Notes: generated by a model not told the origin, from the letters alone. A DNA stretch of 64,000 bases from IMGVR_UViG_3300032242_003291:248001-312000, one strand, 5' to 3'. Counted from the first letter of the stretch, positions 2,642 through 40,316 are shown. Numbers and translations are program-made.

Positions 2642-4402
2642 TTAATCAATCCTGATTACATAAATTAAATCATTTTGTATTCTTACTTCATCAACATTTC
2701 CGTCATAACTACCAATACATCCACCATAACCATCCGCATCAATTACCCCTTGGATAAAATCATCTTTATCTATGTAATCCTGCCAATCAAGTCCAAAGTC
2801 ATTCATAAAGTATTGTGGGTCCCTTTTAACATCATTAACTAAGTCATCTACTTTCTCATCCATTAAGTCCTCGGGAAATTCACCTTCAGGATTTTCTTCA
2901 ATCTCTGTAATTTCATCATTATATTCTTCGATTCTTTCATTAAGTTCTTCAATTTTCTCATCTATGTCTGAATCATCATCACTACCATAATGGTCCTCTA
3001 AACTCGAGATTGTTTTTTCTGCTTGCTCAATTCTCATTTTTAAGATATCAATCTTTTCAACTTGCTCATCTGAAAGTTGTCTATCTTCATCATTGAAATA
3101 TGAATCAGGATTTTGATAAACATCTTCATTGTAGATTTCATAAGCTCTGTGTGCCACAGCTTCTTCATCTATATAAGACTGTGCAAACCCTTCGCTAAAT
3201 CCTTCATAACCAATATCGTCAATTAAACTTTCGACATAATCGTAACAACTTCTGTCCATATCCCCTTCGAATCCTGCAGCATATCTATTACCATCAACAG
3301 GGCTATCAATTAATTCAAATTCAGCTAAACTGTAATGTTCTCCTGTTGGAATTATATTATATACATCCACCTTATCTTCTTTCAAACTTTCAATCTCTTC
3401 TTCTAAAGATTCTATTTGGTCTAACAATCCTCTATCTACGTCCTCACCATTATCATATTGGCGTTGTAATTCGTCAATTTGATTTTGGATAGAATCTATT
3501 TCGGCTCTATCTTCATTTGTTAGTACTTCAACCTCTCCATTATCAACTAAATAATTCAATACCGCATGTGCAAGTAAACCTTCATTTGGACAATTGGGAC
3601 CTAACTCCCATTCATTATTTTGTCTTCTTTCTTGAGATTCTTCTTGTCTCCCGTGTTTTAATTTTTTTAGTCTTAATTTGTCTTGTCTTTCTCTTTCTTT
3701 TTTTGCTTCTTCTTGGTCTCTAAAAACTTTTAATTGGGACGCATATTCTTCTTCCATATAAGAATTAATTGCATCACTTATTTTATTATATTCAACTGAA
3801 CCTAAAGTTTCAGGTAACGATTTTATAGTTTCATCAACCGCATTATAAGAAGACTTATCATCATTGAATTTTTGTAAAATTGCTATTTTATATAATGGGT
3901 CGTCGGTTTTCTTTGTTTTATCCAAAATATAAAATAACTTACCATCCTCATTATATCTTTTGAATTGATAATCAGAGTCCGCAGCAGTACACCATTTAGT
4001 TCCTCTACCGTAATAACAAGAAGCTTCATGTGTTTGTGGATTTACAACAAAAAATCTTGGGTCTTCATAAACAACGTTACCTCCCTCAACTTTCTTAATT
4101 TGTCTTCTTGGTTTATTTTCATAATCCTTTAATGCTTGAATTAGTTGTCCTGCATTTTTATATTCATTAATATCTGGCTGTGGAAGATTAGTTGATATTT
4201 TTTCAAATTTATTAATTGCATCAACAAGTAATGGAAAATTTTCATCAAAATTTACCGTATCAAAACTCTTACCAACCCACATCAAAAACTTTTGAGGTAT
4301 TGTATCAAGAATTTTTGTTATTTGTTCCTGAGTAAATTTTCTACCGTAACTGTTTTTGAAGTCATCAACTCTGTTCTCTAATATAATTTCTGAAAATTTC
4401 AT
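2642..4402 (-). CDS. putative head-packaged protein: leader + GTKWCT domain + very acidic C-terminal half
   Basis: MKFSEIILE leader; ASCYYGRGTKWCTAA motif shared with 17927..19240 and 39429..40316; D/E-rich tail; TATTTAT upstream. Confidence 0.7.
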   Translation of the reverse strand: MKFSEIILENRVDDFKNSYGRKFTQEQITKILDTIPQKFLMWVGKSFDTVNFDENFPLLVDAINKFEKISTNLPQPDINEYKNAGQLIQALKDYENKPRRQIKKVEGGNVVYEDPRFFVVNPQTHEASCYYGRGTKWCTAADSDYQFKRYNEDGKLFYILDKTKKTDDPLYKIAILQKFNDDKSSYNAVDETIKSLPETLGSVEYNKISDAINSYMEEEYASQLKVFRDQEEAKKERERQDKLRLKKLKHGRQEESQERRQNNEWELGPNCPNEGLLAHAVLNYLVDNGEVEVLTNEDRAEIDSIQNQIDELQRQYDNGEDVDRGLLDQIESLEEEIESLKEDKVDVYNIIPTGEHYSLAEFELIDSPVDGNRYAAGFEGDMDRSCYDYVESLIDDIGYEGFSEGFAQSYIDEEAVAHRAYEIYNEDVYQNPDSYFNDEDRQLSDEQVEKIDILKMRIEQAEKTISSLEDHYGSDDDSDIDEKIEELNERIEEYNDEITEIEENPEGEFPEDLMDEKVDDLVNDVKRDPQYFMNDFGLDWQDYIDKDDFIQGVIDADGYGGCIGSYDGNVDEVRIQNDLIYVIRID

Positions 4403-4416
4403 TCAACTTTTATTTA

Positions 4417-4461
4417 ATAAATATCTTTTGTATTGTATAATTGGATTACAAACATATTTAT
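4417..4461. promoter_or_regulatory. divergent pair of TATTTAT putative late promoters
   Basis: TATTTAT on minus at 4417-4423 (gene starting 4402) and on plus at 4455-4461 (gene starting 4491). Confidence 0.6.
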
Positions 4462-4490
4462 AATAATAAACAAAACAAAATTTAATAATC

Positions 4491-4664
4491 ATGGGATGCG
4501 GATGCAAAAATAACGGAAATAACCCACCAGCTCAGCCACAAACTCCTCAACAAGTTCAACAGGCTCAACAAGCTAAGGTACAACAAAATGAAAGTGTTAA
4601 ATCTGCTATTAAAAAAACAGTAGAAAAATACTACAACGTGAACAAAACAAACACAAACGGCTGA
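4491..4664 (+). CDS. small Gln-rich protein with MGCGCK N-terminus (57 aa), not in ORF track
   Basis: MGCGCKNNGNNPPAQPQTPQQVQQAQQAKVQQNESVKSAIKKTVEKYYNVNKTNTNG*; own TATTTAT motif upstream and terminator downstream. Confidence 0.75.
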   Translation: MGCGCKNNGNNPPAQPQTPQQVQQAQQAKVQQNESVKSAIKKTVEKYYNVNKTNTNG

Positions 4665-4697
4665 ATCAAAGATTAAGGTATTTGTAAAAACTATTTC

Positions 4698-4725
4698 AAA
4701 GGAGCAATAAAATGCTCCTTTTTTT
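4698..4725 (+). terminator. intrinsic terminator
   Basis: AAAGGAGCA-ATAAAA-TGCTCCTTTTTTT hairpin with T-run. Confidence 0.75.
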
Positions 4726-4737
4726 GTATTTATATGT

Positions 4738-5742
4738 ATGGAATATTCTTGGGACGACATAGTAGAAAAATTCAATAATAATGATTTAGACGTTGAAAAG
4801 TATTTTAACGATTATCAGACATTTTTTAGTATCTTGAAAAAAAGAGGGTTAATGAGTGAAGTTGACCCAAAAAATGGCACTTCTAGCGAATACTGGCAAA
4901 ATGAATATCTATTATGGTTATATGAAAATGATAAAGAAAAGTATTACAAATGGATTCAAGAATTGTTGAACGATATTGTTATTGAAAATGGAATTGCATA
5001 CTTAGAAGTAACAGATAGGTCTGAATTATCTAAATTGTTTTGTAAGAACAGTAGAGGTGATATCAGTCGTGATACCATCGAATCTATTTTGTCAGGGGAA
5101 CGTGATTGGGAGCCTTACTACGATACAACGGATGATGTTTATGGAGACGTCATTGAAGAACTAACACCTGAAAATGATAAAAGATTGTGTGAATACATTG
5201 TTGAAACTTTAAAAGGTCAACAAGTTATAGGTTTGAGTGAAGAATTAGAACAAATCGCATCAGAACAAGGTCATCCTGATTATGTCGAAGTTAACATGGA
5301 AAATGTTAAAAGAATAGTTGACGACAAAGAATCTATGATTGAACTTTTAGATAACCAACTACACGATTTGAAAAGTGAGTTGTATTCAATCCATAGTAGT
5401 GCATATAACGACGCATATGAATCAGAGATTTGGGACGAGATATTTGATGAATTAAAAATTTATATAATAGGTTCAGGTGAATGGATAACCAAATCACACC
5501 CTTATAAAAAAAATACAGAAATTCAATATTTTAAGGTACCTTTGGTAGACTTTGAATCAAATATAAACGATTACTTAATTAATAATAAAGGTTACGGTCA
5601 ATCGGGGACGTTGGAGTATCACGGTAGTTACATCGATATCATGGCTGAAGATAGAGATTGTTTAAGTATAAGAGTACCTGATTATCCTGATTCAAGGAAA
5701 GTTGATAAAAATATTAATTTATACTTCAAAGATTATATTTAA
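4738..5742 (+). CDS. acidic hypothetical protein
   Basis: 334 aa, D/E-rich; TATTTAT at 4727-4733. Confidence 0.75.
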   Translation: MEYSWDDIVEKFNNNDLDVEKYFNDYQTFFSILKKRGLMSEVDPKNGTSSEYWQNEYLLWLYENDKEKYYKWIQELLNDIVIENGIAYLEVTDRSELSKLFCKNSRGDISRDTIESILSGERDWEPYYDTTDDVYGDVIEELTPENDKRLCEYIVETLKGQQVIGLSEELEQIASEQGHPDYVEVNMENVKRIVDDKESMIELLDNQLHDLKSELYSIHSSAYNDAYESEIWDEIFDELKIYIIGSGEWITKSHPYKKNTEIQYFKVPLVDFESNINDYLINNKGYGQSGTLEYHGSYIDIMAEDRDCLSIRVPDYPDSRKVDKNINLYFKDYI

Positions 5743-6530
5743 TGAAAATTGAACAAATGATACATAAAGTTTTAGAGGAACAAAGAGGTTTTACCCCACA
5801 CAAAAATCCTCCTAAGAACATCAAGAATATTCTATCTCAGATTGAATTGTTTGAAATGTATCCAAAGATTTTTGCCCTTGTGATTAAAGATGATAAGTTA
5901 AGAGCCAGAGTATTCATGCGTTACCAAGAGTTCTACGAATCGGACTCTGATTCATTCAGAGGTAAAGGATTCAAATGGTATGACTACGTTAAATTCTATA
6001 AAGAAAAGACAAAGAAAGATTACTTCTCATATCACGAAGATTGGGCAGGATATAATATTCCATGTACTTCTATTGAGTCATGTATGGCTGTTATCCCCGA
6101 CCTTAACTTCTATGATTTAATAATGTTCAGTGTTGTTGATACAATCAGAGAACAAGTTGGTAGTGAAAACTTTTATTTAATTGGTATTGACCAATCAACA
6201 GGAGAAGACCCATCACTTATATTCCATGAGGTTGCTCACGGATTATGGTTTTCATCCGCAGTATACAAAGCAAAACAATCTAAGAACATAGAAAGATTAA
6301 AACCTTTTGTTAGAGATGCAGTTGCGAAAAAGATTACTGGTATGGGTTATGGTGAAAACGTTGTGGATGATGAGATTCAAGCATATTTATCTACAGGTAT
6401 TGGTGATAACATGACAAGAATAAAAGATATCAAACAAGCCCAAATTCCATTCAAAGAAACATTTGATTCTTATGCTGGTAAAATAAAACCAAAAAAGATT
6501 CAAATTGATTGGAGTACTGACTTAGACTAA
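5742..6530 (+). CDS. putative zincin metallopeptidase with N-terminal leader
   Basis: IFHEVAHG (HEXXH) plus downstream DEIQAY; MKIEQMIHKVLEEQ leader. Confidence 0.65.
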   Translation: MKIEQMIHKVLEEQRGFTPHKNPPKNIKNILSQIELFEMYPKIFALVIKDDKLRARVFMRYQEFYESDSDSFRGKGFKWYDYVKFYKEKTKKDYFSYHEDWAGYNIPCTSIESCMAVIPDLNFYDLIMFSVVDTIREQVGSENFYLIGIDQSTGEDPSLIFHEVAHGLWFSSAVYKAKQSKNIERLKPFVRDAVAKKITGMGYGENVVDDEIQAYLSTGIGDNMTRIKDIKQAQIPFKETFDSYAGKIKPKKIQIDWSTDLD

Positions 6531-7384
6531 TGATTAAATTTATTAACATATTAGAAAACGTTATATCAGAACAAAAGAAATATCAATTTCATCCTGAAGT
6601 ACTTCAGAAGTTAAAAGATATTACAAATAGACTTTGGAATGATAGAAAAAAGAAATACAAAGGGAGAACATTAGTCGACTCTTTAATATTTCACGTTGCT
6701 GATGGTACTGAAGGTTTAGTTAAGTTTTATGTAAATCCTGATTTACCATACATTGGTTTCATGGATACTGAACCAAAAAAATCTACAAATCCTAAAGATA
6801 TATACATTGATGTTAATCCTAAAAACTACGAAAGTAAAAAGAATTTATATCTCACACTATATCATGAAATGATTCATGCGTCAGACCCTAATTTGTCAAC
6901 CAAGATGACTAAAAAATACATGTCAACTTATGATGAGAATAGTGATGAAAAGTATTGGGGTCATCCAATTGAATTCTTTGCAATAACTAACGAATTTTTG
7001 GAAGGCTTGATAAATGAATTCCAACTAAGAGTGTTCAGATTAAGAAATGTTGAAAATAAAAAAGCACTAATCAAATCATTTAATAACATATTAAATTATT
7101 TTTCAAAAGGTGAAAAGTTATCAAGATTATCTTTGAATATTTTGGACAGAATAAATGATACTGGTGTAGTTGAAGATAAATTCAAAAGAGTTTTTTCAGA
7201 TATTTCAGTTGAAAGTCCAATTTCTTCTGAATTAGTTAAGTCTGAAGATGAAGAACCATATTATTTAACATATATTAATTTAATCAAAAAATACAATCCG
7301 AAAATTTGGACAAGGTTTTTAACGATGTTATATAAAGCAAAGGAAGATGTTGAAGATGTGATAAATAAAAAGGGACTTAAATAA
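6530..7384 (+). CDS. putative zincin metallopeptidase with N-terminal leader
   Basis: LYHEMIHA (HEXXH) plus HPIEFFA; [15 protein letters not shown] leader. Confidence 0.65.
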
Positions 7385-7393
7385 GTCCCTTTT
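7368..7393. terminator. bidirectional terminator hairpin within overlapping 3' ends of convergent genes
   Basis: AAAAGGGACTTA-AA-TAAGTCCCTTTT. Confidence 0.7.
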
Positions 7394-9200
7394 CTTTTGC
7401 TATTAATTCCAATTTGTCTAATTTGTTTTGACTAACTTCAAGAATAACCGATTGTTCTTTTATTGCTTCAATACATAATGCAACAATATCTTGATATTTA
7501 ACTCTTAAAATTTCAGGTTCTTCACCCATTACTACTTCGGGTAATGCGATTTTAAGCTCTTGAGCGATAAACCCTATGTCTCTTCTTTCATTATTTCCAC
7601 CTGCTCCGTTTTTCCAAAAGAAACTAACCCCTCTAATTTTTTTAATTGTATTAATTGAATCTTTTATTATTTGGATATCTTTCTTAAACCTTTGGTCTGA
7701 TGGACCTGGAGGACCCGTTGGTCCTGTTGGTCCTGGCGCTCCTGTATCACCTGGTGCGCCTCCAGGTCCTGTCGGTCCTGTAGGTCCTTGAGGACCTTGT
7801 GGACCTGTATATCCTGTTGGTCCTCTACCTCCTTGTGGACCTGTTGGTCCTTGTGGTCCTGTTGGTCCTGTTGGACCTGGTGCACCACCACCACCTTGGC
7901 TTCCTTGAGCTCCTGTAGCACCTCCACCTCCTTGAGCACCCTGAGCACCTCCAGGTCCTGTTGGTCCTGTTGCACCTTGTGGTCCTCTTGGTCCCTGTGG
8001 CCCCGTTGCCCCTTGGGCTCCTTGACCTCCTGTTCCTCCTTGGGCTCCCTGAGCTCCTTGAGCTCCACCAGCTCCTTGAGCTCCCTGAGCTCCTACGGGT
8101 GATGGTCCTGGTATTCCTGTTGCACCTTGAGCACCTTGAGCTCCTGTAGCACCTCCACCTCCTTGTGCACCTTGTGCACCTTGGCTTCCTCCAGGACCTT
8201 GTGCACCTTGGTTTCCTCCAGGACCTTGAGCTCCTTGCGCACCTTGTCCTCCTGTAGCACCTTGGGCTCCTGTTGAACCTCCGCCTCCTTGTGCACCTTG
8301 CGCACCCTGTCCTCCTGTTGCTCCTTGAGCCCCTTGTGGTCCTTGGACTAAAATTCCTGTTGGTCCTTGAGCACCTGTAGCACCTTGTGGACCTGTAGCT
8401 CCTTGAGCACCTGTGATTCCCTGAGCTCCTTGAAACCCTTGTGCTCCTTGACCTCCTTGAGCACCTACTGAACCTAAACTTCCTTGAGCACCTTGTCCTC
8501 CTGTAGTTCCTTGAGCACCTTGTGGTCCAGCATTTCCTTGAGCACCTTGAAATCCTTGGGCTCCGATTGCACCTTGTGAACCTGTTGCTCCCTGTCCTCC
8601 CTGAGCCCCTTGGGCACCTTGTCCTCCTGTTGAACCCGCACCCCCCTGTGCACCTTGTCCTCCTTGAGCACCTTGAGCTCCTTGTCCTCCTGTCGGTCCT
8701 TGAGCACCTTGTGCTCCTGAAGCACCTTGAGCACCCTGAGCGCCTTGTCCTCCCTGAGCACCCTGAGCGCCCGTTGCTCCTCCTCCTCCTTGAGCACCCT
8801 GAGCACCTTGTCCTCCTTGAGCACCCTGAGTTGTACTGTTAGCTCCTTGTGCTCCCGCAGTTCCTTGGGCTCCTTGCGCACCTTGGATTCCCTGAGCTCC
8901 TTGAGCTCCTTGAGCACCTTGAGCCCCTGTTGGTCCTGATGGTCCTGCTGGTTGAGCACTTCCTTTCCAACCTGTACTATCTATTAAAGTTCCAAATGAA
9001 TTAATTAAAGATGTACCTAATCTTAAGTCAGCATTCGAAACTGCTATTGTTGGTTGAGTCGAATTAAATGCTATATAGGTTGTTGCACCTCTTTTGAATT
9101 TAATTGAACCAGATTCAATGACCATTGTTGTTACTGTACTCGCAGTATCACTAAAATCAATTTTGCCCGACCCTGGGGTTATAATTATATCTTCAGCCAC
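7377..9200 (-). CDS. collagen-like tail fibre/spike with C-terminal peptidase S74 intramolecular chaperone
   Basis: long Gly-X-Y (GAQ/GPT) tract followed by [10 protein letters not shown]...DIGFIAQEL...AIKE. Confidence 0.85.
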
Positions 9201-12200
9201 CTATTAACTCTTTTAGTTTGTTTATTCTTTGATAGATAGAATCAATTATTTTTTGTTGTTCTTGTATTGAACCAATACCCAAACTAACCATCGCACCATA
9301 TTCTACGGATTTGTATCCGTCTTCATCAGTAAATACTAATTCGGGAACTATATTTTCAACTTGTTGAGCAATAACACCAATAGCATTACCTTGAAAGGCT
9401 TCAGGTACTTCAATATTTTTGTCATTTATAATTTTCGGATGATTATAATCCCAAACGAAACTAACTCCTTCTATTTGTTTTGTTTTGCCGTAAACATCAG
9501 ACAAAGGTTTAATATTATCTTTTAATCTTCTATCTGATGGAGGGCCTTGTGGTCCTTGAGGTCCTGTTGGTCCTTGAGCACCTTGGGCACCTTGTCCTCC
9601 CATACCACCCTGTGGTCCTGTAGGTCCTACGTTTCCTTGAGGTCCTGTGTATCCGTATGGTCCTTGTGGTCCTGTGGCACCTTGTGGTCCTGTGGCACCT
9701 TGAGGTCCTGTTGGTCCTCCAACACCTTGAGCACCTGTTGCTCCTCCACCACCCTGAGAACCTTGCGCACCTGTTGCTCCTCCACCACCTGTCGCTCCTT
9801 GAGCTCCTTGGAATCCTTGAGCACCTCCTGGTCCTCCTGGCCCTTGAGCACCTTGTGGACCACCTGGTCCTGTGGCACCCGTCGCACCTGCAGTTCCACT
9901 TGCTGCCCCTTGAGCTCCTTGAGCTCCTTGACCTCCAGTTCCACCTTGAGGTCCCGTAGGTCCTTGAGCACCTGTTGCTCCTCCTCCACCTGCGGTTCCT
10001 TGAGCTCCTTGAGCTCCAGTTGTGGCACTTGCAGCACCTTGAGCACCTGTTGGTCCCTGAGAACCTTGAGCACCTTGAGCACCTGTTGTTCCACCCTGAG
10101 CACCTTGAGCACCAGTACCTCCTTGAGCGCCTTGGGCACCTTGAGCACCTGTTGTTCCACCTTGTGCTCCTTGAGCTCCTGTGGCACCTTGAGGACCTAA
10201 TCCTCCTTGAGCCCCTGTGGCACCTTGAGCACCTGTTGAACCTTGAGCACCTTGAGCACCTGTTGAACCTTGAGCACCTTGTACACCACCTTGAGCTCCT
10301 TGAGCTCCTTGAGCACCTTGTGGACCTTGTGGGCCTTGAGCACCTTGAGTAAGTCCTTGAGCTCCTTGAGCACCTGTAGCTCCTTGAAAACCCTGAGCTC
10401 CTTGAGCTCCTGTTACCACACTTGCACTTCCTTGAGCTCCTTGGGCTCCTGTATTCCCTGTGGCTCCCTGAGCTCCAGTTGTCACACCTTGAGCCCCTTG
10501 TGCTCCCTGAGCTCCCGTATTTCCTGTAGCTCCTTGAGCCCCTGTATTAGCACCTTGTGCACCTTGAGCACCTGTTGAGCCTTGAGCCCCTGTATTACCT
10601 TGAGCCCCTGTGTTGGCACCTTGTGCACCTTGGGCACCTGTCGAACCTTGAGCACCTGTTGCCCCTTGAGCACCTGTCGCCCCTTGAGCACCTGTTGTAC
10701 CTATAGTACCTTGAGCCCCTGCTGAACCTTGAGCCCCTGTAGGACCTGTGTTACCTGGAGCTCCTGTTGCTCCTTGAGCACCTTGACCACCTTGTGCACC
10801 TGCGGAGCCTTGAGCACCTGCTATACCTGATGTGGGTCCAACCCAAACTCCTGTATTATCAATCATCTTAAGACCACCAACATATAAATTACCTGTTACT
10901 GAAGTTCCACTTGAAACCATAGTATCTGTAATTGTTGATGAACTTGTGTTAGTTGAAGATGAAAAAACAATTTGACCATTTTGTACATCTATTGCCATCA
11001 AATTTGTTCCGTCATTAAACAACGCGTAAGGGTCAGTAATAGTTCCTTTACCTTGTGGATATATAATTACATTAGCCATTAATTCAATTTATTTTCTAAG
11101 TCTTTTAATTGTTCTTCGATGTCTTCAATAAATACTTGTTGTTCTTTTATACCTTCAACTAAAACCGCATTTAATTTAGCATACTCAACTTTATAATATC
11201 CATCTTCCGTAGTTTGTATTACTTCAGGGTAATATTCTCTAACGTTTTGTGCAATTAATCCAATTGAGTGTAATCTATCTTGTTTTTGATAATAAACGTA
11301 TTGACTTGGATTTAATTTTTCGTTCCAATCAAATTCAACAACATCAAACTTCAATATAGATTTCAATGTATCAGGAATTGTTTCAATTCCTTGTTTTAAT
11401 CTTCTATCTGAACAAAATCCCTGTGCAGACCAATAACTTCGATTATCTAAGTAACCGTAAACACCACAGATTTTAACGTAATTATTTTCAATTCCTGTAC
11501 CCGAGTTATTAAATGTTTGACATGCATAGTACGTAGGATATAAAAGTCCATATCCTCTTGATGAAATATTACATGCATAGTCATTTCCAAAAACTAAACC
11601 ACCATTACCATAATAACAAGCATAGCTTATAGAAGGTCCCCATTCGATACTAAGACTATAACAAGTTTGATATGCTGATGGACCTGTCGGACCTGCTGGA
11701 CCTGATGGGCCTTGAGCTCCTTGCGCTCCTTGATAACCAGTAGGTCCTGTATATCCGTATGGTCCTGGAGGGCCGTAGGGTCCTGTTGGTCCTTGTGGCC
11801 CTGTTGGTCCTGTTGGTCCTGTACCACCTTGAGGTCCTTGTGGTCCAGTACCTCCCTGTGCCCCTGTTGCACCTCCACCACCTTGTGACCCTTGTGCACC
11901 TGTCGCACCTTGTGGGCCTGTTGGACCTGTCGGTCCCGTGGCTCCTTGTGCTCCTGTGGCACCACCTCCTCCTGTGCTACCTTGAGCTCCTTGAGCTCCT
12001 GTTGGACCTCCTGGACCTGTTGGACCTGTGGGTCCACGAGAACCTTGACCTCCTGGTGCTCCTGTTGAACCTTGTGGTCCCGCCGCGCCTCCACCTCCTT
12101 GAGCTCCTTGAGCTCCTTGTCCTCCTTGTGCTCCTGTATTACCTGTGGCTCCTTGTGGACCTCTTGTTCCTGTAGCACCTGGTGAACCTTGAGCTCCTGT

Positions 12201-13150
12201 GGCACCTCCCGCTCCTTGTGGACCAACATTACCCGTATTTCCTTGTGCACCTTGGTTCCCTGTACCACCCGTAGCACCTGTTGGACCTCTAAAACCTACA
12301 GCTCCTTGTGCCCCTGTTGGTCCTACTGGACCTTGAGCACCTTGTGGTCCTGTGGCTCCTTGTGCCCCTGTATTACCTTGAGCCCCTTGTGGACCTTGAG
12401 CACCTTGTGGGCCTGAAGCTCCTTGTGCACCTGTAGGTCCTTGTGCCCCTGTACTACCTTGAGCCCCTTGTGGTCCTACAAAACCTGTATTACCTTGTGC
12501 ACCTATATTACCTTGAGCTCCTTGTCCACCTGTTGGTCCACGTGAACCTTGTGCTCCTTGTCCTCCTTGAGCTCCTGTATCCCCTCCCGTTCCTGTTGGA
12601 CCTACAGCACCTGTGGCACCTCCCAAACCTTGTGAACCATTTGCTCCCGTCGCACCTTGTGGTCCTGGTGCACCTGTTTTTTTTATGATTAAGTTGTAGT
12701 TATTACCAATAGTTAGAGAACCAACAAAAGAATCATTAGTAAGTATAGCATAAAATGTACCAAAATCAGTTACACTTGTAATTAAAGTATTTATCCAACC
12801 ATTAGTACCATCAGTATATGTAAGTGAATCACCAACATAAGGTAAAGCTAATGTATTTCCATTAAAATCAGTTTTGTTTACATTTGCTCTTTTTGCTAAT
12901 GATTTATATAATTGTCCTGCGTCATTCGAAAAAGCATATTGATACGGGTTTGTATTACCTGCATAACCTTGAGCCCCTTGACCTCCTTGCGACCCTGTAT
13001 TACCTGTGCTACCTTGGGAGCCTGTTGCACCTTGAGCACCTGTATTACCTTGAGCACCTGTATTACCTTGAGCCCCTTGTCCTCCTTGTGCTCCTGTTGT
13101 ACCAACAGCTCCTTGAGCTCCTGTTGTACCTTGTGTACCTTGCGGTCCTT
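7700..13150. repeat. collagen-coding 9-bp-period repeats (e.g. CCTTGAGCA/CCTTGAGCT)
   Basis: hundreds of GAQ/GPT/GPQ triplets across the three fibre genes; locally high GC. Confidence 0.9.
9193..11079 (-). CDS. collagen-like tail fibre/spike with peptidase S74 chaperone
   Basis: Gly-X-Y tract then [10 protein letters not shown]...[13 protein letters not shown]. Confidence 0.85.
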
Positions 13151-14150
13151 TATATCCAACACATTTACCTACACAACTTGTATATGCATATCCTGTTGGA
13201 CAAGTGTATCCTGATGAAATATATATTCCATTTACGTTTTGAACAACTTCTGCACTTGTTTTACCACTTGATGATGAAATAATATTCAATTGGGAAACAC
13301 TTGTAGCTGCCGTTAATTGGGCTAATGTATTATCATAAACTTCATATCCAAAACCTTGGATTGAACCTTCGTTCAGTCCATAAAGTTCTAAAGTATGATT
13401 TCCCCCAGACAAAGTAATTGGATAGACGTTCCAATATTTGAATGTATTAGGACTTCCTGAAGTTGAAGGGGTATATGTATTTACAACATCTGTTGAATCT
13501 AATCTAAGTCTGTATTCGTTGTCCGCACCAACACCAATATAGTAGGTTTTACCAGCAGTTATTCCTGACAAACATGTAGAATAACCATACCAATAATAAT
13601 CTTGTACTGTTGAACCTGATTTACCAGACCTATTTAATGGTCCGTCAAGTCCACTTGGTTGAGTTCTTCTCCAAACACCAGCATTTAATGACGTTGCTTG
13701 AACAGTACCAGAACCATCAGTGGCATATCCTGAAGCGAAAAATCTTGTTCCAAAATCACTATATTCAATAGCGGCCGTATTTGTTAATGAAACCGTAAAG
13801 GCTGGTGGTGTTGGGTCTATAATGTTACCTGTGTATCCTTGTGCACCTGCAGCACCTTGTGCACCTGAAATATTTGTGGTTGGTCCAACCCAACTTGATG
13901 TTGCGTTTATGACTTGAGTTCCGTTAACTCCAAAGTAACCTGTGACATTTAATGAACTACCAATTGATATAATTGCGTTACTTGGCTGAATTGATAATAC
14001 ACTACTTTGTGTGGTCGAACTAAATTGTACTGTCGCACCTGATAAAACTTGTAAAGTAAGAGTTCCTGTATTAGTAAAATTGATGTAAGGTATACGTGTT
14101 GCCAACCTTGATACCGCATTACTCGGATAGATTATTATATTTTTAGCCAT
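11079..14150 (-). CDS. collagen-like tail fibre with inserted globular domains and peptidase S74 chaperone
   Basis: Gly-X-Y tracts interrupted by a ~220 aa beta-rich domain and a ~90 aa insert; Cys/Tyr-rich tip; [10 protein letters not shown]...IGLIAQNV. Confidence 0.85.
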
Positions 14151-15622: not shown

Positions 15623-15947
15623 TTTTATATTGTTTTAATAATTGTGATAAGAACATGTACAATTCTGTGTACTGTTTTACGTTATAATAAATAGTTAAAT
15701 TTGAAATTATGTCTGAATGTGGAACTACTCTGAATTTAACGAATAAATAAAAGTTTTGTTGGCTTTCAAAAATTACTTCTTCAAATTTTATAATACCACT
15801 TTCATTCATTGATGACTTTTCATAAACTCTCGTTAACTTTTTTTCGTTTAGATATTTCAAAAAATCCCCTTTTAATTCAGGTGCAACCATTACCGAGAAG
15901 ATTCCTTCATTTGATTCTATGTTTTTTATATATTCTGGTTTATCCAT
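15594..15947 (-). CDS. hypothetical protein
   Basis: 117 aa ORF coupled to neighbours. Confidence 0.65.
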   Translation of the reverse strand: MDKPEYIKNIESNEGIFSVMVAPELKGDFLKYLNEKKLTRVYEKSSMNESGIIKFEEVIFESQQNFYLFVKFRVVPHSDIISNLTIYYNVKQYTELYMFLSQLLKQYKNATTNNRPT

Positions 15948-17578
15948 TATAAAAAAATATTATTGAAAAATAATGATTGATTACTATCAATAGTTTTATG
16001 TGTCCATCTAAGATTTCCTTGTTCATCCCAATATGAATCCGACTTAAGGGTCGTACCATTATTACACTCTTTGGTTAACTTTACAGTATCAAATCTTTTG
16101 TCTCTTACACAAGATAATACTTGTTGGTCTAATTTCAATAGAACCGAAGTCCACACATCATCTAATTTTTGATTAAACTTACCTAAACTTTGAACTCTAT
16201 TAGCACTTACCAATGCTCCACTCATGTTCATCCTGTATTCAATAGTTGCCCTTTCATCACCTTTTTGTACAGAGATAATCAAAGAACCAGGTTTACCAAT
16301 ATAACCTTTAACACAATTAGATTGGAAATTACTCTCATCATTATAGTTTTTACTACTATCTAACAATGTTGGGTGGTAGACTTCGAATATTGGTTTAGAA
16401 ATTTTTTCATACATATATTCGGGATAGTGTCTACTATAAGTTCCCATCTTATAATGTTGTAATTTGTCACTCCAATCCAAATGTTCTTTTCTAAAATCTT
16501 CTTTACTCTCAACTGATTGCCACCTCAAATCACGTTCACCAAACATTTTCAATTCTGTATACATTCTGATATGGTCATGAAATGTATATGAATCTAAATT
16601 TTGATGAATGAAAACTTGTTTGAAAAGAATATATACTCTCCTCAATTCTTCTTTTGAAATGAGTTCAGAAAACAATCGAGGGTAATTAATTGAACCTAAA
16701 AGTGAGTTAGGTGAGTTTAATATATCTACAATAATATTTTCTTCGTCTTGGTTTAACCAATCATCTCCAAAAAGTTTTCTCGCCGCTTGATATAATTCAA
16801 TATTTAATTTATCACATGTATGTAATGCATGTTTAACTTTTTTTCCTGATAACTGATGTTTAATCATAATGGCATCAACTAATTTGTTACCATTCTTTTT
16901 CAGGATTTTTTTAATCTCAGGACCTACTAATTGACTCGGAAATATTTTGAAATTATTTGGGTACTTGTAATTTCTCTTATCAAGATAAAATCTGAATAGT
17001 CTATCCCCAAAATTTAGTGTTTCGAAATTTTGTCTTTGGTCTATTTGAAACATAAATTCAGAAAACGCAATTGATACTTCATCATAAGAATTTTCAGTAA
17101 ATCTTGTAAGAATGTTTTTAATTTTAGACTTGAGTGATTCAATAGGTTCTAAATAAAAAGCATTTCTCTTAACCGCCTTTACACATTTTTTCTTCCTTTG
17201 ATATCCACGGATATGACCGCTATACACATCACCAGTTTTAGTATTAACTGAAATATAATCTACATTCTTTTCAACTTTGAACCATAGCTTACCTTCCCCT
17301 CTATGCCTAAATCCTGTAAATAATTTAATTACAACCTTGTCTTCATTTTTTTCGACAACAATCATCACGTATTCTTTTGAAATGGAACACAATGGATTGA
17401 ATAGATTTTCAGTATAACACTCTTCGCCCTCAACATTACCATTATTTATAAACAACGGATGTTTTTCTGTCACATAAAAAATATTGTCATCATTATTTAA
17501 TGGAAATATTTTTGTTTGGTCTTTATACTTGACTGTATTGTATCTCTCAAAATTTTTCTTGTAGATTTCCTCTTTCAT
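15947..17578 (-). CDS. PcfJ-like domain protein
   Basis: C-terminal ESNFQSNCVKGY...RATIEY...QSLGKFN pattern; TATATTTG at 17584-17591. Confidence 0.7.
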   Translation of the reverse strand: MKEEIYKKNFERYNTVKYKDQTKIFPLNNDDNIFYVTEKHPLFINNGNVEGEECYTENLFNPLCSISKEYVMIVVEKNEDKVVIKLFTGFRHRGEGKLWFKVEKNVDYISVNTKTGDVYSGHIRGYQRKKKCVKAVKRNAFYLEPIESLKSKIKNILTRFTENSYDEVSIAFSEFMFQIDQRQNFETLNFGDRLFRFYLDKRNYKYPNNFKIFPSQLVGPEIKKILKKNGNKLVDAIMIKHQLSGKKVKHALHTCDKLNIELYQAARKLFGDDWLNQDEENIIVDILNSPNSLLGSINYPRLFSELISKEELRRVYILFKQVFIHQNLDSYTFHDHIRMYTELKMFGERDLRWQSVESKEDFRKEHLDWSDKLQHYKMGTYSRHYPEYMYEKISKPIFEVYHPTLLDSSKNYNDESNFQSNCVKGYIGKPGSLIISVQKGDERATIEYRMNMSGALVSANRVQSLGKFNQKLDDVWTSVLLKLDQQVLSCVRDKRFDTVKLTKECNNGTTLKSDSYWDEQGNLRWTHKTIDSNQSLFFNNIFL

Positions 17579-17602
17579 CACTGCAAATATAAGAAAATAA
17601 AA

Positions 17603-17624
17603 AAGGAGAACAAACGTTCTCCTT
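17603..17624 (-). terminator. intrinsic terminator
   Basis: AAGGAGAAC...GTTCTCCTT hairpin with A-run on plus (U-run on minus). Confidence 0.6.
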
Positions 17625-17627
17625 ATA

Positions 17628-17909
17628 TTAATTTAGACAAATTAGTCCGTATTTTGTTGTTATGAATATGTCTTTGATTTTCTTATCCAAGACAGGGTCT
17701 TTACCATTAATCTTAACACAAATCTCCATTAATTGAGTTTGAGTTAAACTAGCTTCTTCTCCTTTATCAAAGTTTTTTGAAGCTTGTTCACGAATTTTGA
17801 CATAAAATTCTTCTTCTTTATCTTTAGGTACCAAATTTAATAAATCATTTGGGTTCTCCCTGAAGAATTTTAAGATGTTATTCATGTATATGTCAACATC
17901 AACACTCAT
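17628..17909 (-). CDS. hypothetical protein
   Basis: 93 aa ORF. Confidence 0.7.
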   Translation of the reverse strand: MSVDVDIYMNNILKFFRENPNDLLNLVPKDKEEEFYVKIREQASKNFDKGEEASLTQTQLMEICVKINGKDPVLDKKIKDIFITTKYGLICLN

Positions 17910-17926
17910 AGATTAAATTTTTGAGA

Positions 17927-19240
17927 TTACTCTTGAAGGTCCCACATTCCTCCACCCATATCAGTACCTTTTGCTTTGATTGATTCAGGAACATTAACAT
18001 TATTACTTCCTTTTAAGTTTAAGAAGTATAAGTTTGGAATGTCCGCAATACATTCAGGAATTGATTTCAACTTAGGGTTATTAATTAACGCTAAGAATCT
18101 TAACTTAGGTAATGAACAAATTGCATCTGGTACACTTTCAATACAGTTATCCAAAAGAATCATATGTAAGTTTTTGAATCTTCCGATTTCCTGTGGAATA
18201 TTAATAGTGATATCACTCTTGTTATCTCTATTTTGAATTTGGAATTCTTGTAGAGTATCAGGTAAATTACCAATCAAATCATCTAAACCATAAAGAGCAA
18301 TGAATTTACCAATTGCACCATGACTGAAACTATCAATTATTAATTTTTCACCACCAACCGTAAGTCCTTTCGCAAATTCAGGTTTGAATAACTCTTTCAA
18401 CTCTTTCATTGGACCATTTAAGTATTGAACCAAATCAATCTGATGGTCATGAATATCCATGAATTGATTGGATGGGAAATGGAATTGATATCTTTCTTTT
18501 GGTAAACCTGATGGGTGAACGTTTGTATCAGTTGGTTTGTAAACCACATATAATGGACCATCCTTAATATATCTATCGAACCAATTCAAACCAGGTCCTG
18601 AAGTACACCATCTTGTTTCTTGTTGATTACCACCGTAAAAACATGCAGCTTCTTTTCCTAACGCACCTTTATCTTTGATTTCAACAACTCTCCACTCATC
18701 ACCATCATATAAAAGTTTTGAGCCAGGATGAACTGTTGCCGTTTTTCTTTCAGTTTTAGTTGTTGTTGCAAGAGTCAAATCAAAATCTTTAACCGCATCA
18801 AATAACTGACGAGGAGTTAATTTGTTAATATCTTTTTCACCTTTAATCTTATTCTTGAATCTATCGAATTTTGTAAGGTCCTCAGTTACTTTATATAAAT
18901 CCTCCATAAAAAGGTCCTTAACTTGCTTAACCTCTTTCTCATATCCATTATCACCAGGTTGTCTTTCTGTTGTTGGAGTTAAGTAATTTTTAATTAACCA
19001 TTGAACATACTTACCCACCTTGATTTTCTCAAGTTCTTTTGGGTCTTTACTATCAGGGTCAACGTTGTTCATTCTTGACGTTGGGTCAGCCTGAACTAAT
19101 GCCATGAACTCTTGTTTAGTCAGTTTTGGTTTAGTTTTATTCCCTTTTTTATCCTCACTAGGTTTTGTTAGTGCGTTGTATAAAACCTCAAACCTTGACT
19201 GTTCTGATATTATTGATTTAAGTATTGACGTAAATTTCAT
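17927..19240 (-). CDS. leader + WCT domain + C-terminal leucine-rich repeats
   Basis: MKFTSILKSIISEQ; AACFYGGNQQETRWCTS; LRR units IPQEIGRFKNLHMILL / VPDAICSLPKLRFLAL / IPECIADIPNLYFLNL. Confidence 0.75.
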   Translation of the reverse strand: MKFTSILKSIISEQSRFEVLYNALTKPSEDKKGNKTKPKLTKQEFMALVQADPTSRMNNVDPDSKDPKELEKIKVGKYVQWLIKNYLTPTTERQPGDNGYEKEVKQVKDLFMEDLYKVTEDLTKFDRFKNKIKGEKDINKLTPRQLFDAVKDFDLTLATTTKTERKTATVHPGSKLLYDGDEWRVVEIKDKGALGKEAACFYGGNQQETRWCTSGPGLNWFDRYIKDGPLYVVYKPTDTNVHPSGLPKERYQFHFPSNQFMDIHDHQIDLVQYLNGPMKELKELFKPEFAKGLTVGGEKLIIDSFSHGAIGKFIALYGLDDLIGNLPDTLQEFQIQNRDNKSDITINIPQEIGRFKNLHMILLDNCIESVPDAICSLPKLRFLALINNPKLKSIPECIADIPNLYFLNLKGSNNVNVPESIKAKGTDMGGGMWDLQE

Positions 19241-19283
19241 CTAAAAAGATTTAATTATAAATATATTGTGAGAGCAAAAATAA

Positions 19284-20123
19284 CTAATAATTCAATATCA
19301 ACAGCTCTTCACCCATATTTTGTTTGGTATTTTTTTTCGCAGAAGCTGCTTTAGCAAATTCTTTACGTTCCCAACGGTATAAATCTTCAGGAAACCAATC
19401 ATGTAATAGCGGAAAATCGTAATATGATAGACTGAATTTACCTTGAATACCTTGAAGGGTATTTGCAAGTCTTTCGTGGTCTTGTCGGTCAAAATCATGA
19501 TTAGAATAGTAATTCTCTGTTTTCCAATATGGTGGGTCTAAGTAGATGTATGTTGATTTTGAATCATATTTGTTTATTACATCCCCAAAATCCATATTCT
19601 CAACATCTGTAATCTTCAAAAAATGGTCAATCCAGTTAGGTTTACTTAACTTATCCCTGAAAGAAAGGTATTTGGACCTATATTTCCCCTTCAAATCTAT
19701 AAATGAAGATGTCTCAGGCTTACTACCTGAAAACACCTGTGTGAGGACATAAGCGTACTTAGCAGCCACTTCATAATCAGGATAATTGATTGTAAATCCA
19801 GAGCTGAATAATTCTTGTTGGAATGTATTAAATCTTTCTTTGTGTTCGGGCGGAGTAACATCAACTCCGATTTGTTGTACGGATATTGAATCTAACGCTC
19901 TTTGCAGTTCAGATGGATTCTGAACACACTTAAATAGATTATAATTTAATGGGTTAAAGTCATTATAAACAACTTTCTTAAGATTTGGGTACTGACTCAA
20001 ATTCATATTAAAGAAACACCAAAACATCCCTCCGAATGTTTCAACATATGTTTCCATGTCCTGTGGGTAATATGGAACTATCCATTTACCAATTTTTGAT
20101 TTTCCACCGATATAACTTAGCAT
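19284..20123 (-). CDS. DNA adenine methyltransferase, Dam/D12 class
   Basis: YIGGKS, YVETFGG, YLDPPY motifs. Confidence 0.9.
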   Translation of the reverse strand: MLSYIGGKSKIGKWIVPYYPQDMETYVETFGGMFWCFFNMNLSQYPNLKKVVYNDFNPLNYNLFKCVQNPSELQRALDSISVQQIGVDVTPPEHKERFNTFQQELFSSGFTINYPDYEVAAKYAYVLTQVFSGSKPETSSFIDLKGKYRSKYLSFRDKLSKPNWIDHFLKITDVENMDFGDVINKYDSKSTYIYLDPPYWKTENYYSNHDFDRQDHERLANTLQGIQGKFSLSYYDFPLLHDWFPEDLYRWERKEFAKAASAKKNTKQNMGEELLILNY

Positions 20124-37494: not shown

Positions 37495-38113
37495 TAATTA
37501 TTTTGTCTCGTTTTCTTATATTATCTAAAGCCCATAGTGGTTGTAAATTAGTATAATGACACAACCTTTTCAATTCTTCATCATTTTTTGCCGATGATAT
37601 TGGTATAATGTGGTCAATATGCCAACCAAATAATCCGTGATTTTCCCAAGTCATCCCCATCCAAAATTGTTTTTCAAGATATTCTTTTAATTGTAATGGA
37701 GAACATCCAATTAAATCAAAAGTTTTTTCCTTTTTTGACCTAAGAATTTTATTAATTTTAGACCTATACAACATTTTCAATTTTAATATAGGTTCATTTT
37801 TTTTCCTTTCAGACATTCTTTCATTTATAATATCTCTTTTATTTTTTACATAACTTTTCTTATATTCTTTAACTTTGTCTTGATTATTTTCACCCCATAA
37901 TTTAACTCGTTCTATCACATGACCCTTATTATGTTCGTAATAAATTTTTGATTTTTCTGAAATTTTACTTTTGTTTTTTAGGTAATATTCCAATTTATAT
38001 TCTTTATTACAAACTTTACATATTGGTTGTAATCCGTCATTTCTATTTTTATCTTTATTAAAGTCACAAATATTTTTAGATAATTGGCATTTAAGACAAG
38101 TTTTTGTTTCCAT
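37484..38113 (-). CDS. HNH endonuclease with N-terminal Zn-binding CxxC motifs
   Basis: CLKC...CKVC; WHIDHIIP...HYTNLQPLWA.DN..K. Confidence 0.85.
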   Translation of the reverse strand: METKTCLKCQLSKNICDFNKDKNRNDGLQPICKVCNKEYKLEYYLKNKSKISEKSKIYYEHNKGHVIERVKLWGENNQDKVKEYKKSYVKNKRDIINERMSERKKNEPILKLKMLYRSKINKILRSKKEKTFDLIGCSPLQLKEYLEKQFWMGMTWENHGLFGWHIDHIIPISSAKNDEELKRLCHYTNLQPLWALDNIRKRDKIINGD

Positions 38114-38255
38114 TGTTCTTATAGTTTTTAAGTAACTGATTTACTAATGAAGATAAATTAATATGAATACTTCTATAATACGCCAATAATTCTGGGTCTA
38201 ACGCAACCGATACTTTAGTTTTTTTCTCTTCTAATGTTTTTAATTTTCTCCCCAT
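38091..38255 (-). CDS. ribbon-helix-helix (CcdA/CopG-like) protein (54 aa), not in ORF track
   Basis: MGRKLKTLEEKKTKVSVALDPELLAYYRSIHINLSSLVNQLLKNYKNNGNKNLS*. Confidence 0.65.
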   Translation of the reverse strand: MGRKLKTLEEKKTKVSVALDPELLAYYRSIHINLSSLVNQLLKNYKNNGNKNLS

Positions 38256-38262
38256 ATTAATA

Positions 38263-38295
38263 AATATTCACAAATATAATAAAAGTGTGAATATT
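38263..38295. promoter_or_regulatory. inverted repeat (putative operator) over the RHH-HNH promoter
   Basis: AATATTCACA-N13-TGTGAATATT perfect 10-bp arms, overlapping TATTTAT and TATATTTG motifs. Confidence 0.55.
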
Positions 38296-38306
38296 AACAA
38301 TTTTTT

Positions 38307-39086
38307 TTAAAAATTAATTAACTTCTCAGTCCCTTCACTTAACGCATCAAACGAATTAATGTAAAAAGAAAGGAAAGGTTTAGGATTAGGTAAATCCACA
38401 AAAGAATATTCGTCTTTTTCAATTTCATATACACCATACCCATGTTTTCTAACTGTTTCCCCAAAATTTTGTTGGATGGTCGAACCGACCATGTACGCCT
38501 TCTTTCCACCAGGGATATCAAAAATTTGTCGTTTATGGATATCACCACAAAGAACCAAATCACACCCTTTGAATTTACTTACATCAAATCCATCTTCAAA
38601 CTTATAACCTATGTCCGTATATAAACCTTGAACTGGTCCGTGAAATAATCCAATATTCTTATTCTTTGATTTTTGTATGTCTGGTGGAATATTATGTTCC
38701 ATTAATGAAAATACACACCAATTAACATTATCGTCCTCATATACCCCTCTATTCTTTAAATAAACAATATTCTCACTATTCAAAGAATTAATAACTGGTG
38801 TCAACGCATCTAATCTTTGTAAATTGGATTCAATCATATCATGATTTCCGATTATCACTATTGTTTTAGCAATTTTAGAACATTCTAAAAATACCCAAGC
38901 AACAAACTCCACCAATTCAGGTGTCATTTGGTTTTTGGAATGAACTAAGTCTCCTGTGAATACTATTCTATCAGGTTGTAATGTCTTCCATTCCTTCAAT
39001 GCAGATTCAAGGATTCCACGATATAAATCGTGGTCCTTGAATAATCTGATATGTAAATCTGAAAAGTGTACTAATCTTTTAATCAT
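38307..39086 (-). CDS. sbcD: SbcD/Mre11 (gp47-like) metallophosphoesterase nuclease domain
   Basis: SDLH, TGDL, GNHD, LFHG, GDIHK.Q, GS..QQNFGE. Confidence 0.9.
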   Translation of the reverse strand: MIKRLVHFSDLHIRLFKDHDLYRGILESALKEWKTLQPDRIVFTGDLVHSKNQMTPELVEFVAWVFLECSKIAKTIVIIGNHDMIESNLQRLDALTPVINSLNSENIVYLKNRGVYEDDNVNWCVFSLMEHNIPPDIQKSKNKNIGLFHGPVQGLYTDIGYKFEDGFDVSKFKGCDLVLCGDIHKRQIFDIPGGKKAYMVGSTIQQNFGETVRKHGYGVYEIEKDEYSFVDLPNPKPFLSFYINSFDALSEGTEKLINF

Positions 39087-39228
39087 TGTCTGTCATTAAT
39101 GAGAATCCAAGTATCATAAAAATTGAACCTACAGCCCAATTTTCAAACACTATGAATTGTGAAATACCTGTACCGATAAGGATATAAGGTCCGAACTTTC
39201 TCCAAAGTTTTGTAAATTTATTCTTCAC
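39079..39228 (-). CDS. small two-TM membrane protein (49 aa), not in ORF track
   Basis: GTG start; KNKFTKLWRKFGPYILIGTGISQFIVFENWAVGSIFMILGFSLMTDND*; fills an operon gap. Confidence 0.5.
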   Translation of the reverse strand: MKNKFTKLWRKFGPYILIGTGISQFIVFENWAVGSIFMILGFSLMTDND

Positions 39229-39454
39229 TGATTATTGGGTTTTGTTGTTCTTCAAATGGATTTTGTCCTTTATTTATGTGTCCACATTCGTCACACTTAT
39301 AAATTGGAAATGGTACTGTTGTATCTTCAGGAGCTCCTTGTAATCTTGAAACAAATTTCAAGTAAATTACCTCTCTGAAGTATACCGAATCACACTTATC
39401 GCATTTAACTGTGGGAGAATCCCTTAAATTAACCCTCCGTCCTAAATCTTGCAT
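39218..39454 (-). CDS. zinc-ribbon protein
   Basis: CDKC...CDECG. Confidence 0.7.
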   Translation of the reverse strand: MQDLGRRVNLRDSPTVKCDKCDSVYFREVIYLKFVSRLQGAPEDTTVPFPIYKCDECGHINKGQNPFEEQQNPIISEE

Positions 39455-40316
39455 ATTCTTCGTTTTTTAATGTTTTATGTAGGTTGTTTATTGTTTCCTG
39501 TAAATTAGAAATATAAGTAAGATTTCTGGTTTGTTCAAGTATTTGAATGTGTTCTGATAATGTTTTGAAATCTAAAGAACCTAATGTTGTTGTAAATTTA
39601 TCTATGAAATCTTTTGATTTTCTTGTTTTTTTCATGTGAACGAAATAAGCCCTAAAATACCAAAAAATTGTTTGGAGTTCATTTTCAGTCCACCCATTAT
39701 TCAAAAGAGCGGTATCTGCAACATCTGAATCATTAGCATTATAAACTAAAACTTCACCTGAGAACGCACTAAAATTATACTCAAGATACAATGCGAATTT
39801 ATTATAGTTTGTTTGTCTTTTACCTGTCTTATCAATAATATAACCAAGTAATCCGTTTCTAACGTATCGTTGAAAGGTGCTTGTATCATTTCTACTAGCC
39901 GTACACCATTTGGTGCCTGCACCGTATTTTAATGAACCTCTATGAGTTAAAGGTGATAATAACAAATAATCATCAGTCTCATGTAAAACTATAACATGTT
40001 CGTCTCGGATAAAAGTTTTTTCATCTTTGATTTCTTCTGCCCGAAGTATAGTTTTTCTTAACAGACTAAGACTGGTATAATCCTTGGCGTAAATGTCTTT
40101 GTTATCTATGTAAGGTAACAACTCATCGAACTTGTTCACTAAATCTATAAGACCATCAGTTGTCGATGGACAATCGTTATAACCTCTATTTGACCAACTT
40201 TTTAATAAGTAATCTAAATATTTTTTTGTTGGTGTCTTATCTGCATCGACAAGTTTATTAAATGTTCTTGCTATGACTCCCTCATATTTGAGTTTTAATT
40301 CATCAACTTTTGACAT
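39429..40316 (-). CDS. GTKWCT-domain protein (paralogue of 2642..4402)
   Basis: GSLKYGAGTKWCTAS...F.RY...G.L.YI.DK; TACCTTTG upstream. Confidence 0.75.
   Translation of the reverse strand: MSKVDELKLKYEGVIARTFNKLVDADKTPTKKYLDYLLKSWSNRGYNDCPSTTDGLIDLVNKFDELLPYIDNKDIYAKDYTSLSLLRKTILRAEEIKDEKTFIRDEHVIVLHETDDYLLLSPLTHRGSLKYGAGTKWCTASRNDTSTFQRYVRNGLLGYIIDKTGKRQTNYNKFALYLEYNFSAFSGEVLVYNANDSDVADTALLNNGWTENELQTIFWYFRAYFVHMKKTRKSKDFIDKFTTTLGSLDFKTLSEHIQILEQTRNLTYISNLQETINNLHKTLKNEEYARFRTEG

Follow-up and report, generated by a model that had tools for sequence, protein, structure and literature searches.

Of all phage factors, the host is first exposed to the internal, or ejected, proteins, and those of T4 include an anti-restriction protein and an ADP-ribosyltransferase; to our knowledge, their counterparts in jumbo phages are mostly uncharacterised. 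Two further points of reference are the polyvalent proteins of phages and conjugative elements, reportedly described by Iyer et al. in 2017, and the PcfJ-like family (PF14284), for which a literature search found no functional study. In T4, the protease gp21 cleaves after L/I-X-E, and the first ten residues of the internal protein IPIII are a capsid-targeting sequence with which unrelated cargo has been loaded into the head for ejection (PMC9026906). Here we analysed three genes, encoding proteins of 586, 437 and 295 amino acids (aa), in a stretch of 64,000 nucleotides (nt) of a viral genome (IMGVR_UViG_3300032242_003291:248001-312000; the whole stretch is called the window). All three proteins carry a module built around a Trp-Cys motif, referred to below as WC.

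The IMG/VR virus record containing the window (bases 248,001 to 312,000) is 317,259 bp long and is rated complete by CheckV. The genome is that of a T4-like jumbo myovirus, and no close relative was found among the GenBank phages searched. The best overall explanation of the WC proteins, which we hold with slightly better than even confidence, is a Trp-Cys head of the PcfJ superfamily carried on varied tails, with four paralogs targeted to the capsid and two cytoplasmic.

The WC module and its six paralogs

The three genes are all on the minus strand, at 2642..4402, 17927..19240 and 39429..40316, and their translations, made without an alternative genetic code, match those given in a preliminary description of the window. 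One module of about 215 residues, comprising a helical N-terminal part followed by an alpha/beta core, is common to all of the proteins. The shared motifs and the paralogy proposed in that description were borne out: the three window proteins align in register through F..(K)DI(N), YG..T.WCT and F.RY...G.L, the 586-aa protein matches the 437-aa protein (BLASTP E value of 3e-9) and the 295-aa protein (E 1.5e-15), and a profile from which the 437-aa protein had been excluded recovers that protein at E 2.3e-30.

The family in this genome has six members rather than the three originally described. The additional paralogs, of 604 aa (genome 121417-123231), 499 aa (genome 125612-127111) and 346 aa (genome ~159827-160867), lie outside the window, and a profile search of the genome found no WC members beyond the six. 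Their C-terminal tails comprise an acidic coiled coil, leucine-rich repeats (LRRs), a short helical tail and three other types. Because the six tails are unrelated to one another by BLASTP, the idea that the paralogs have swapped partners holds, with the number of proteins revised upwards.

In the 586-aa protein (P0001), alignments delimit an N-terminal extension of about 10 residues, in which I-L-E ends at residue 9 (4373..4402), and alignments and the profile place the WC module at residues 11 to 215 (3758..4372), with Trp137-Cys138 encoded at 3989-3994 and a second Cys at residue 129. The module is followed by a very acidic coiled-coil tail, with 108 Asp plus Glu in 371 residues and an isoelectric point (pI) of 4.1.

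The 437-aa protein (P0002) consists of a 13-residue leader ending in I-S-E (19202..19240), a spacer, the WC core (residues 116 to 280, 18401..18895, by alignment; Trp211-Cys212 at 18605-18610) and an LRR tail (residues ~324 to 422, 17975..18271). The LRRs, already reported in the preliminary description, are present though below Pfam thresholds: LRR_8 scores 21.3 bits (cut-off, 27), LRR_14 scores 20.8 bits (cut-off, 40), and LRR_4 is also subthreshold. In addition, the tail matches the NCBIfam XopAC LRR region (E 1.9e-9) and PHROG 6688 (1.8e-7). In distant orthologs the LRR tail is ~50% identical, versus ~70% for the core. The protein resembles the LRR effectors of bacterial secretion systems (XopAC, XopL and XopAE) in combining an LRR tail of bacterial type with a putative functional module, the layout usual for target recognition. 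It differs from them in that the LRR part alone matches, far below the family cut-offs, and in the order of the parts and the nature of the functional module.

Tandem duplicates of the WC-LRR gene are found in some related phages (loci L010 to L012, 3001-5741). The second copy shares ~43% identity with the window protein and carries a separate leader, of the form MKF...V-I-L-E, which suggests ongoing diversification.

The 295-aa protein (P0003) is a stand-alone WC protein with a helical N-terminal part (residues 1 to 101, 40014..40316), in which K32, F63 and K73-D74-I75 are conserved, and an alpha/beta core (residues 102 to 235, 39612..40013) containing Trp137-Cys138 (39903-39908). It has 540 homologs, which are ~295 aa long among the matches listed. 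Its surroundings, in the order primase, 280-aa protein, WC protein, 78-aa protein, Metallophos and SbcC, are kept in orthologs, and the gene is, as judged from its sequence relatives, a conserved core gene of the phage clade. The sixth paralog of the genome is preceded (genome 159,700-159,830) by a sequence that by eye resembles a tRNA 3' end and by a hairpin and T-run of terminator type; the paralog probably begins at MSRLDELK..., which resembles the start of the 295-aa protein.

Conservation of the Trp-Cys site and probable relation to PcfJ

The core profile, searched against 1.84 billion proteins clustered at 50% identity, matched 9,803 cluster representatives at E ≤1e-3, of which 5,672 also passed E ≤1e-10. 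Many of the family members are proteins of 1,000 to 3,300 residues that carry two to five copies of the module. In ten long proteins that were scanned, the fusion partners were LRV/HEAT and WG repeats, ART-PolyVal, classical PcfJ and topoisomerase IB, together with a protelomerase-like piece and a poly(A)-polymerase head domain. Foldseek searches of predicted viral structures added ankyrin- and LRR-fused proteins from giant viruses and uncultured phages. Among cultured phages, BLAST found the module in jumbo phages only, namely, PA5oct-like Pseudomonas phages, Caulobacter phage CcrBL9 and Salicola phage SCTP-2. The distant WC relatives of 1,000 to 3,300 residues that contain ART-PolyVal (PF18760), topoisomerase IB and poly(A) polymerase are like the polyvalent proteins, whereas the window proteins are small and two-part rather than giant polyproteins; the WC module was not found among the named domains of the polyvalent class in Pfam.

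Neither the Trp nor the Cys varies among the 109 aligned domain copies or among the 205 copies collected by motif. The Cys that the preliminary description had placed at the centre of an enzymatic module is therefore conserved in homologs. Six other residues (Y151, G132, D196, T135, D74 and K173 in the numbering of the 295-aa protein) are each at least 89% conserved among the 109 aligned copies. In 71 of these copies there is a second Cys, at position 129; it is present in all four paralogs that bear an N-terminal leader and absent from both leaderless paralogs. Scans of the six paralogs against Pfam, PHROGs and NCBIfam gave no functional name, the matched PHROGs (17056 and 28193) being of unassigned function, and PDB sequence searches with the WC and PcfJ profiles returned nothing relevant.

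The WC module is probably a divergent branch of the PcfJ-like superfamily that lacks a Pfam annotation and in which the Cys has been kept and the His residues lost. The PcfJ model scores 30.6 bits, above its gathering score of 25 bits, on a WC copy of a distant relative (P0131, residues 492 to 640). It matches 19 of the 109 WC copies at E ≤1, while every other family matches at most two. The best PF14284 match in the genome, to paralog P0124 (E 0.008, 13.8 bits), is below the gathering score. Structure comparisons point in the same direction, as a Foldseek search of BFVD returned several entries named "PcfJ like protein" (E 3.5e-4 to 4e-2, probability 0.99 to 0.57) with a template modeling score of only ~0.25, and PcfJ clusters made up 26 of the 30 named Atlas language-model neighbours. 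In one protein that carries both domain types, each element of the WC domain can be matched by eye to one of the His-Cys domain, the Trp-Cys lying opposite the His-Cys. Two results weigh against the assignment. A Pfam scan gave no PcfJ match at E ≤0.01 for the three window proteins or for P0124 to P0126, and the hhalign comparison of WC with PcfJ, made with a shallow PcfJ alignment of 12 sequences, was weak (E 0.15 over 39 columns, with Trp-Cys and His-Cys in register).

Relative to the classical His-Cys dyad of PcfJ, WC keeps the Cys, has an invariant Trp in place of the His and is variable at the position of the second His. The two families have in common the succession of strand, helix, Gly, aromatic residue or His followed by Cys, helix with Tyr and two strands around the motif, as well as the register of the Cys; both occur in phages and mobile elements, sometimes in one giant protein. 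They differ in that WC has Trp for the His before the Cys, that the PcfJ motifs Pro-His...Glu and QQIKGK are absent from WC, that the WC module has its own conserved helical N-terminal part with a K-D-I motif and that the Pfam model misses all six WC paralogs at its cut-off.

The gene for a 544-aa protein (15947..17581, minus strand) adjoins the 437-aa gene, with a 93-aa open reading frame (ORF) between them. This protein has no Pfam match, but it had been described as a PcfJ-like neighbour with a similarly placed Cys, and hhalign agrees: its C-terminal core (residues ~395 to 455, nt 16217-16399) matches the PcfJ profile at E 1.3e-4 (probability 54, 52 columns), with the Cys motifs aligned (residues 422 to 427, 16301-16318). 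A direct relation between the 544-aa protein and the WC module was considered and rejected, as hhalign detected no similarity between the protein and the WC profile; the two are connected only via PcfJ. The order Dam methylase, WC-LRR gene, 93-aa ORF and PcfJ-like 544-aa gene (15947-20123) is found in 10 of 13 related viral contigs, and the remaining three have the same order minus the PcfJ-like gene. Two branches of the superfamily therefore lie side by side in the 10 contigs.

AlphaFold2, run with an alignment of 88 sequences, modelled the 295-aa protein with a confidence (pLDDT) of 95.5; a model of the core by itself reached 97.1. The modelled protein has an all-helical N-terminal part, a core of order beta-beta-alpha-alpha-beta-beta-beta-alpha and a helical tail, and the loop joining the two core helices carries the Trp-Cys, preceded by a Gly-x-Gly-Thr turn. 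In the comparison with PcfJ and with thiol- and acyl-transfer folds that the preliminary description had proposed, PcfJ-like viral models were matched and no enzyme fold rose above noise. Foldseek found nothing in the PDB at E ≤0.001 with either the full or the core model, VIA-align against 48,161 chains gave GNAT-like matches at noise level only, and a structure Atlas search with the model returned unnamed viral clusters only.

It is very unlikely, in our assessment, that the core is a divergent version of a known enzyme fold, such as the N-terminal half of GNAT or a BECR/RelE-like RNase (beta-alpha-alpha-beta-beta-beta-alpha), with catalysis that does not depend on the Cys. GNAT enzymes do account for ~35 of the top 50 VIA matches to the core, an Atlas PBECR4 nuclease cluster scored 0.88, and the conserved Lys163, Lys173, Tyr151 and Asp196 lie on or near the sheet. 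However, the Foldseek result is against such a fold, and no copy had a GNAT or PBECR match among the Pfam families listed. A full GNAT fold includes the acetyl-CoA pyrophosphate-binding loop motif, and the WC core has neither this motif nor the C-terminal GNAT half; the GNAT resemblance of the model is accordingly treated as shared topology only.

Other readings of the motif were set aside. For a thioredoxin-like (WCxxC) site the second Cys at +3 is missing and the secondary-structure context is different, and a phosphatase P-loop was ruled out by inspection, its secondary-structure context also being different. A DNA-binding role, hinted at by the replication-block context and the nucleic-acid enzymes among the fusion partners, was set aside weakly because the module is acidic (pI ~5.5).

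Thiol-dependent catalysis is the leading guess for the chemistry of the WC head, although a tentative one. Equally tentative is the combined proposal that the Trp-Cys is a thiol-dependent active site or ligand site and that each of the unrelated tails, among them the LRRs and the acidic coiled coil, takes the module to a partner of its own. Two observations count against catalysis: the 109 aligned copies conserve neither a His nor any other residue of the kind that classically assists a Cys nucleophile, and two to five intact copies of the module in one polypeptide are unusual for an enzyme. Both features fit a non-catalytic unit for binding or scaffolding, such as a capsid-docking element or adaptor in which the Trp-Cys is structural or holds a ligand, all the more as the copies are interleaved with repeat domains. 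This alternative is possible, if on the doubtful side. Within it, most copies could have a disulfide or a metal site made up of the Trp-Cys and the Cys nine residues upstream, and the distribution of that second Cys, present in the leader-bearing paralogs and absent from the leaderless ones, suits such a role, as does the annotation of the homolog in phage PA5oct merely as a structural protein. By contrast, the pattern of an invariant Trp-Cys after a conserved G-x-G-T turn, with D, K, Y and T residues conserved as well, is seen more typically at active or ligand sites than at residues kept for packing, and the Cys is kept across the WC, PcfJ and 544-aa families though the surrounding residues differ. 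A purely capsid-internal role is further disfavoured by the location of a leaderless paralog in a replication block. The multicopy architecture and the lack of a conserved catalytic partner nevertheless keep a non-catalytic binding or redox role alive beside thiol-dependent catalysis.

Promoters, leaders and proposed packaging into the virion

Of 381 crude gene calls, 81 have TATTTAT in the 60 nt upstream, whereas ~7 would be expected, and the preferred distance to the start codon is 4 to 5 or 12 to 17 nt. The genes so preceded include those for tail fibres and the prohead protease and many very long ORFs. A second, bipartite box, TTTG-N17-21-TA..TTTG, was found 56 times in the genome versus 16 times in shuffled sequence (3.5-fold), mostly before small genes; examples of the form TTTG-N17-21-TA(T/C)CTTTG are at window 40338-40369 and at genome 185,700-187,100 and 233,400-243,200. 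This host-type box matches the sigma-A promoter form of Bacteroidota, and its likeness to that consensus suggests a Bacteroidota host.

As proposed in the preliminary description, the 586-aa and 437-aa genes have both a TATTTAT box and a leader: the boxes, on the minus strand and kept in orthologs, lie 14 nt (4417..4423) and 16 nt (19257..19263) before the respective ATG, and both proteins start MKF... and have a short hydrophobic leader that ends with Glu. Similar leaders occur in paralogs P0124 and P0126. The 295-aa gene has no leader, and the TACCTTTG reported upstream of it is part of a bipartite host-type promoter-like box, TTTG-N20-TACCTTTG, 21 nt before the ATG (40338..40369, minus strand), which its orthologs keep, one of them with a single mismatch. 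Across the genome, four WC paralogs combine TATTTAT with an N-terminal extension of 8 to 13 residues ending in (I/L)-x-E, and the other two have neither and start directly at the first helix of the module. Promoter and leader thus covary in six of six paralogs. Orthologs with 56 to 78% identity, as well as the tandem WC-LRR duplicate, keep the TATTTAT spacing and the (I/L)-x-E while the adjoining residues vary. The split is not perfectly clean, because, in addition to TATTTAT, a weak host-type box is found at a greater distance upstream of the 586-aa gene. Late and early expression of the two groups, as these terms were used in the preliminary description, we infer from the promoter motifs.

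The leaders of the 586-aa and 437-aa proteins, P0124 and P0126 fit the T4-type targeting peptide of about 10 residues ending in L/I-X-E. The genome encodes both a Gp23-type major capsid protein (genome 102330-103073; PF07068, 207 bits) and a gp21-type prohead protease of the Peptidase_S77 family (genome 106526-106960; PF03420, 78 bits). The WC proteins therefore parallel the T4 internal proteins and Alt in having a short N-terminal peptide ending in (I/L)-x-Glu on otherwise unrelated cargo, in a genome with the corresponding protease and capsid protein, and they share with T4 a phage-specific A/T-rich single-box promoter, here predicted from the motif. They differ in having no sequence homology to IPI, IPII, IPIII or Alt, and targeting and cleavage are here predicted. 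The promoter box differs as well, being TATTTAT here and TATAAATA in T4.

The only experiment-based evidence that the family is packaged comes from the Pseudomonas phage PA5oct, for which 93 virion-associated gene products have been reported (PMC7318152). PA5oct has exactly one WC domain (E 1.9e-36), in EST35_0205 (QCG76086.1), which is annotated as "structural protein" with a note of electrospray ionization tandem mass spectrometry (ESI-MS/MS) and whose gene is surrounded by those of further virion proteins identified by mass spectrometry. At the level of the family, this indirectly supports the virion association that had been suggested for the window proteins. EST35_0205 resembles the window proteins in its single module with the WC motif and in its N-terminus of the form MK-hydrophobic-...-Glu; it differs in its C-terminal region, in phage lineage and host and in being the single WC copy of its genome, compared with six here.

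Virion delivery of the leader-bearing paralogs is plausible by analogy with T4, given the pairing of leader and TATTTAT, the encoded prohead protease and the PA5oct virion homolog, and packaging of the window's own proteins is what we would infer on the same grounds. In the proposed scheme, the four paralogs, including the 586-aa and 437-aa proteins, would be expressed from the TATTTAT promoter class, their leaders would act like T4 capsid-targeting sequences so that the proteins are loaded into the prohead, the prohead protease would trim the leaders, and the proteins would be ejected with the DNA. The two leaderless paralogs would act only inside the infected cell; the 295-aa protein would be made from a host sigma-A-type promoter within a primase/SbcCD (replication and recombination) block. 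We put the chances of this combined scheme, read from sequence features, at about even.

Two points weigh against it besides the host-type box of the 586-aa gene. Enrichment of the leader pattern among TATTTAT genes is modest (odds ratio of 2.3, p 0.03), and a hydrophobic-hydrophobic-x-Glu pattern near the N-terminus is also found in 31 of 307 genes without TATTTAT. These same observations speak for a rival reading in which the N-terminal extensions are a mere extra helix and the TATTTAT paralogs are cytoplasmic proteins of the usual late (or middle) kind that do not enter the virion. We consider this unlikely, as the leader is found in exactly the four paralogs with TATTTAT and is absent from the two without it, and as (I/L)-x-E persists in orthologs among varying residues. 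Moreover, the genome contains a protease of the type that in T4 recognizes L/I-X-E (PMC9026906), and the PA5oct homolog with a similar N-terminus is recorded in virions. The six-copy WC family is, from its sequence features, a candidate injected-effector family.

A more far-reaching version of this scheme is that WC is the catalytic head of an unrecognised class of thiol-dependent effector enzymes, lacking any solved relative, that jumbo phages and some giant viruses load into their capsids and eject, with LRR, ankyrin or acidic tails aiming them at host or defence proteins and the leaderless version being remade early in infection. Taken as a whole, we regard this version as quite improbable.

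Genomic surroundings and significance

The window has a G+C content of ~31% and contains three collagen-like tail-fibre genes, SbcC- and SbcD-like genes, a DnaG-like primase gene and DNA methyltransferase genes. The tail-fibre genes are consecutive on the minus strand (7377-14150), encode proteins of 607, 628 and 1,023 aa with repeats and a C-terminal domain in common and account for a local G+C content of 48%, compared with ~31% elsewhere. Between the 586-aa WC gene and the tail fibres are three codirectional genes on the plus strand (4738-7384). TATTTAT lies 4 nt before the ATG of the first, and the second and third encode leader-like hydrophobic-x-Glu N-termini; the product of the third has a weak match, below cut-off, to the Peptidase_M91 "effector protein" family (E 7e-4). 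These genes may encode additional capsid-targeted cargo.

In a 970-aa protein (54393-57305, minus strand), a clear DUF6625 domain (E 1.8e-27) is the only annotated part, and the neighbouring giant ORFs, of 732, 984 and 1,106 aa (43276-52724), match nothing in Pfam or PHROGs. Elsewhere in the genome (187,000-221,000 and 245,449-245,814), dozens of small proteins have a near-identical N-terminal motif of the MK-I-I-I-T-E-Q/S-Q or K-I-I-R-L-T-E-S/N-D-L type, and they look like a large leader-sharing or paralogous family.

The WC module defines a very large domain family, of ~9,800 clusters at 50% identity, that is covered by no Pfam model and that combines one invariant Trp-Cys site and a confidently predicted fold without a solved relative with modular tails. 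A single genome here contrasts versions of the module that have a leader and TATTTAT with versions that have neither. The virion-associated homolog of PA5oct provides a cultured system for experiments, and the PcfJ-like superfamily, whose function is unassigned, gains a testable handle.

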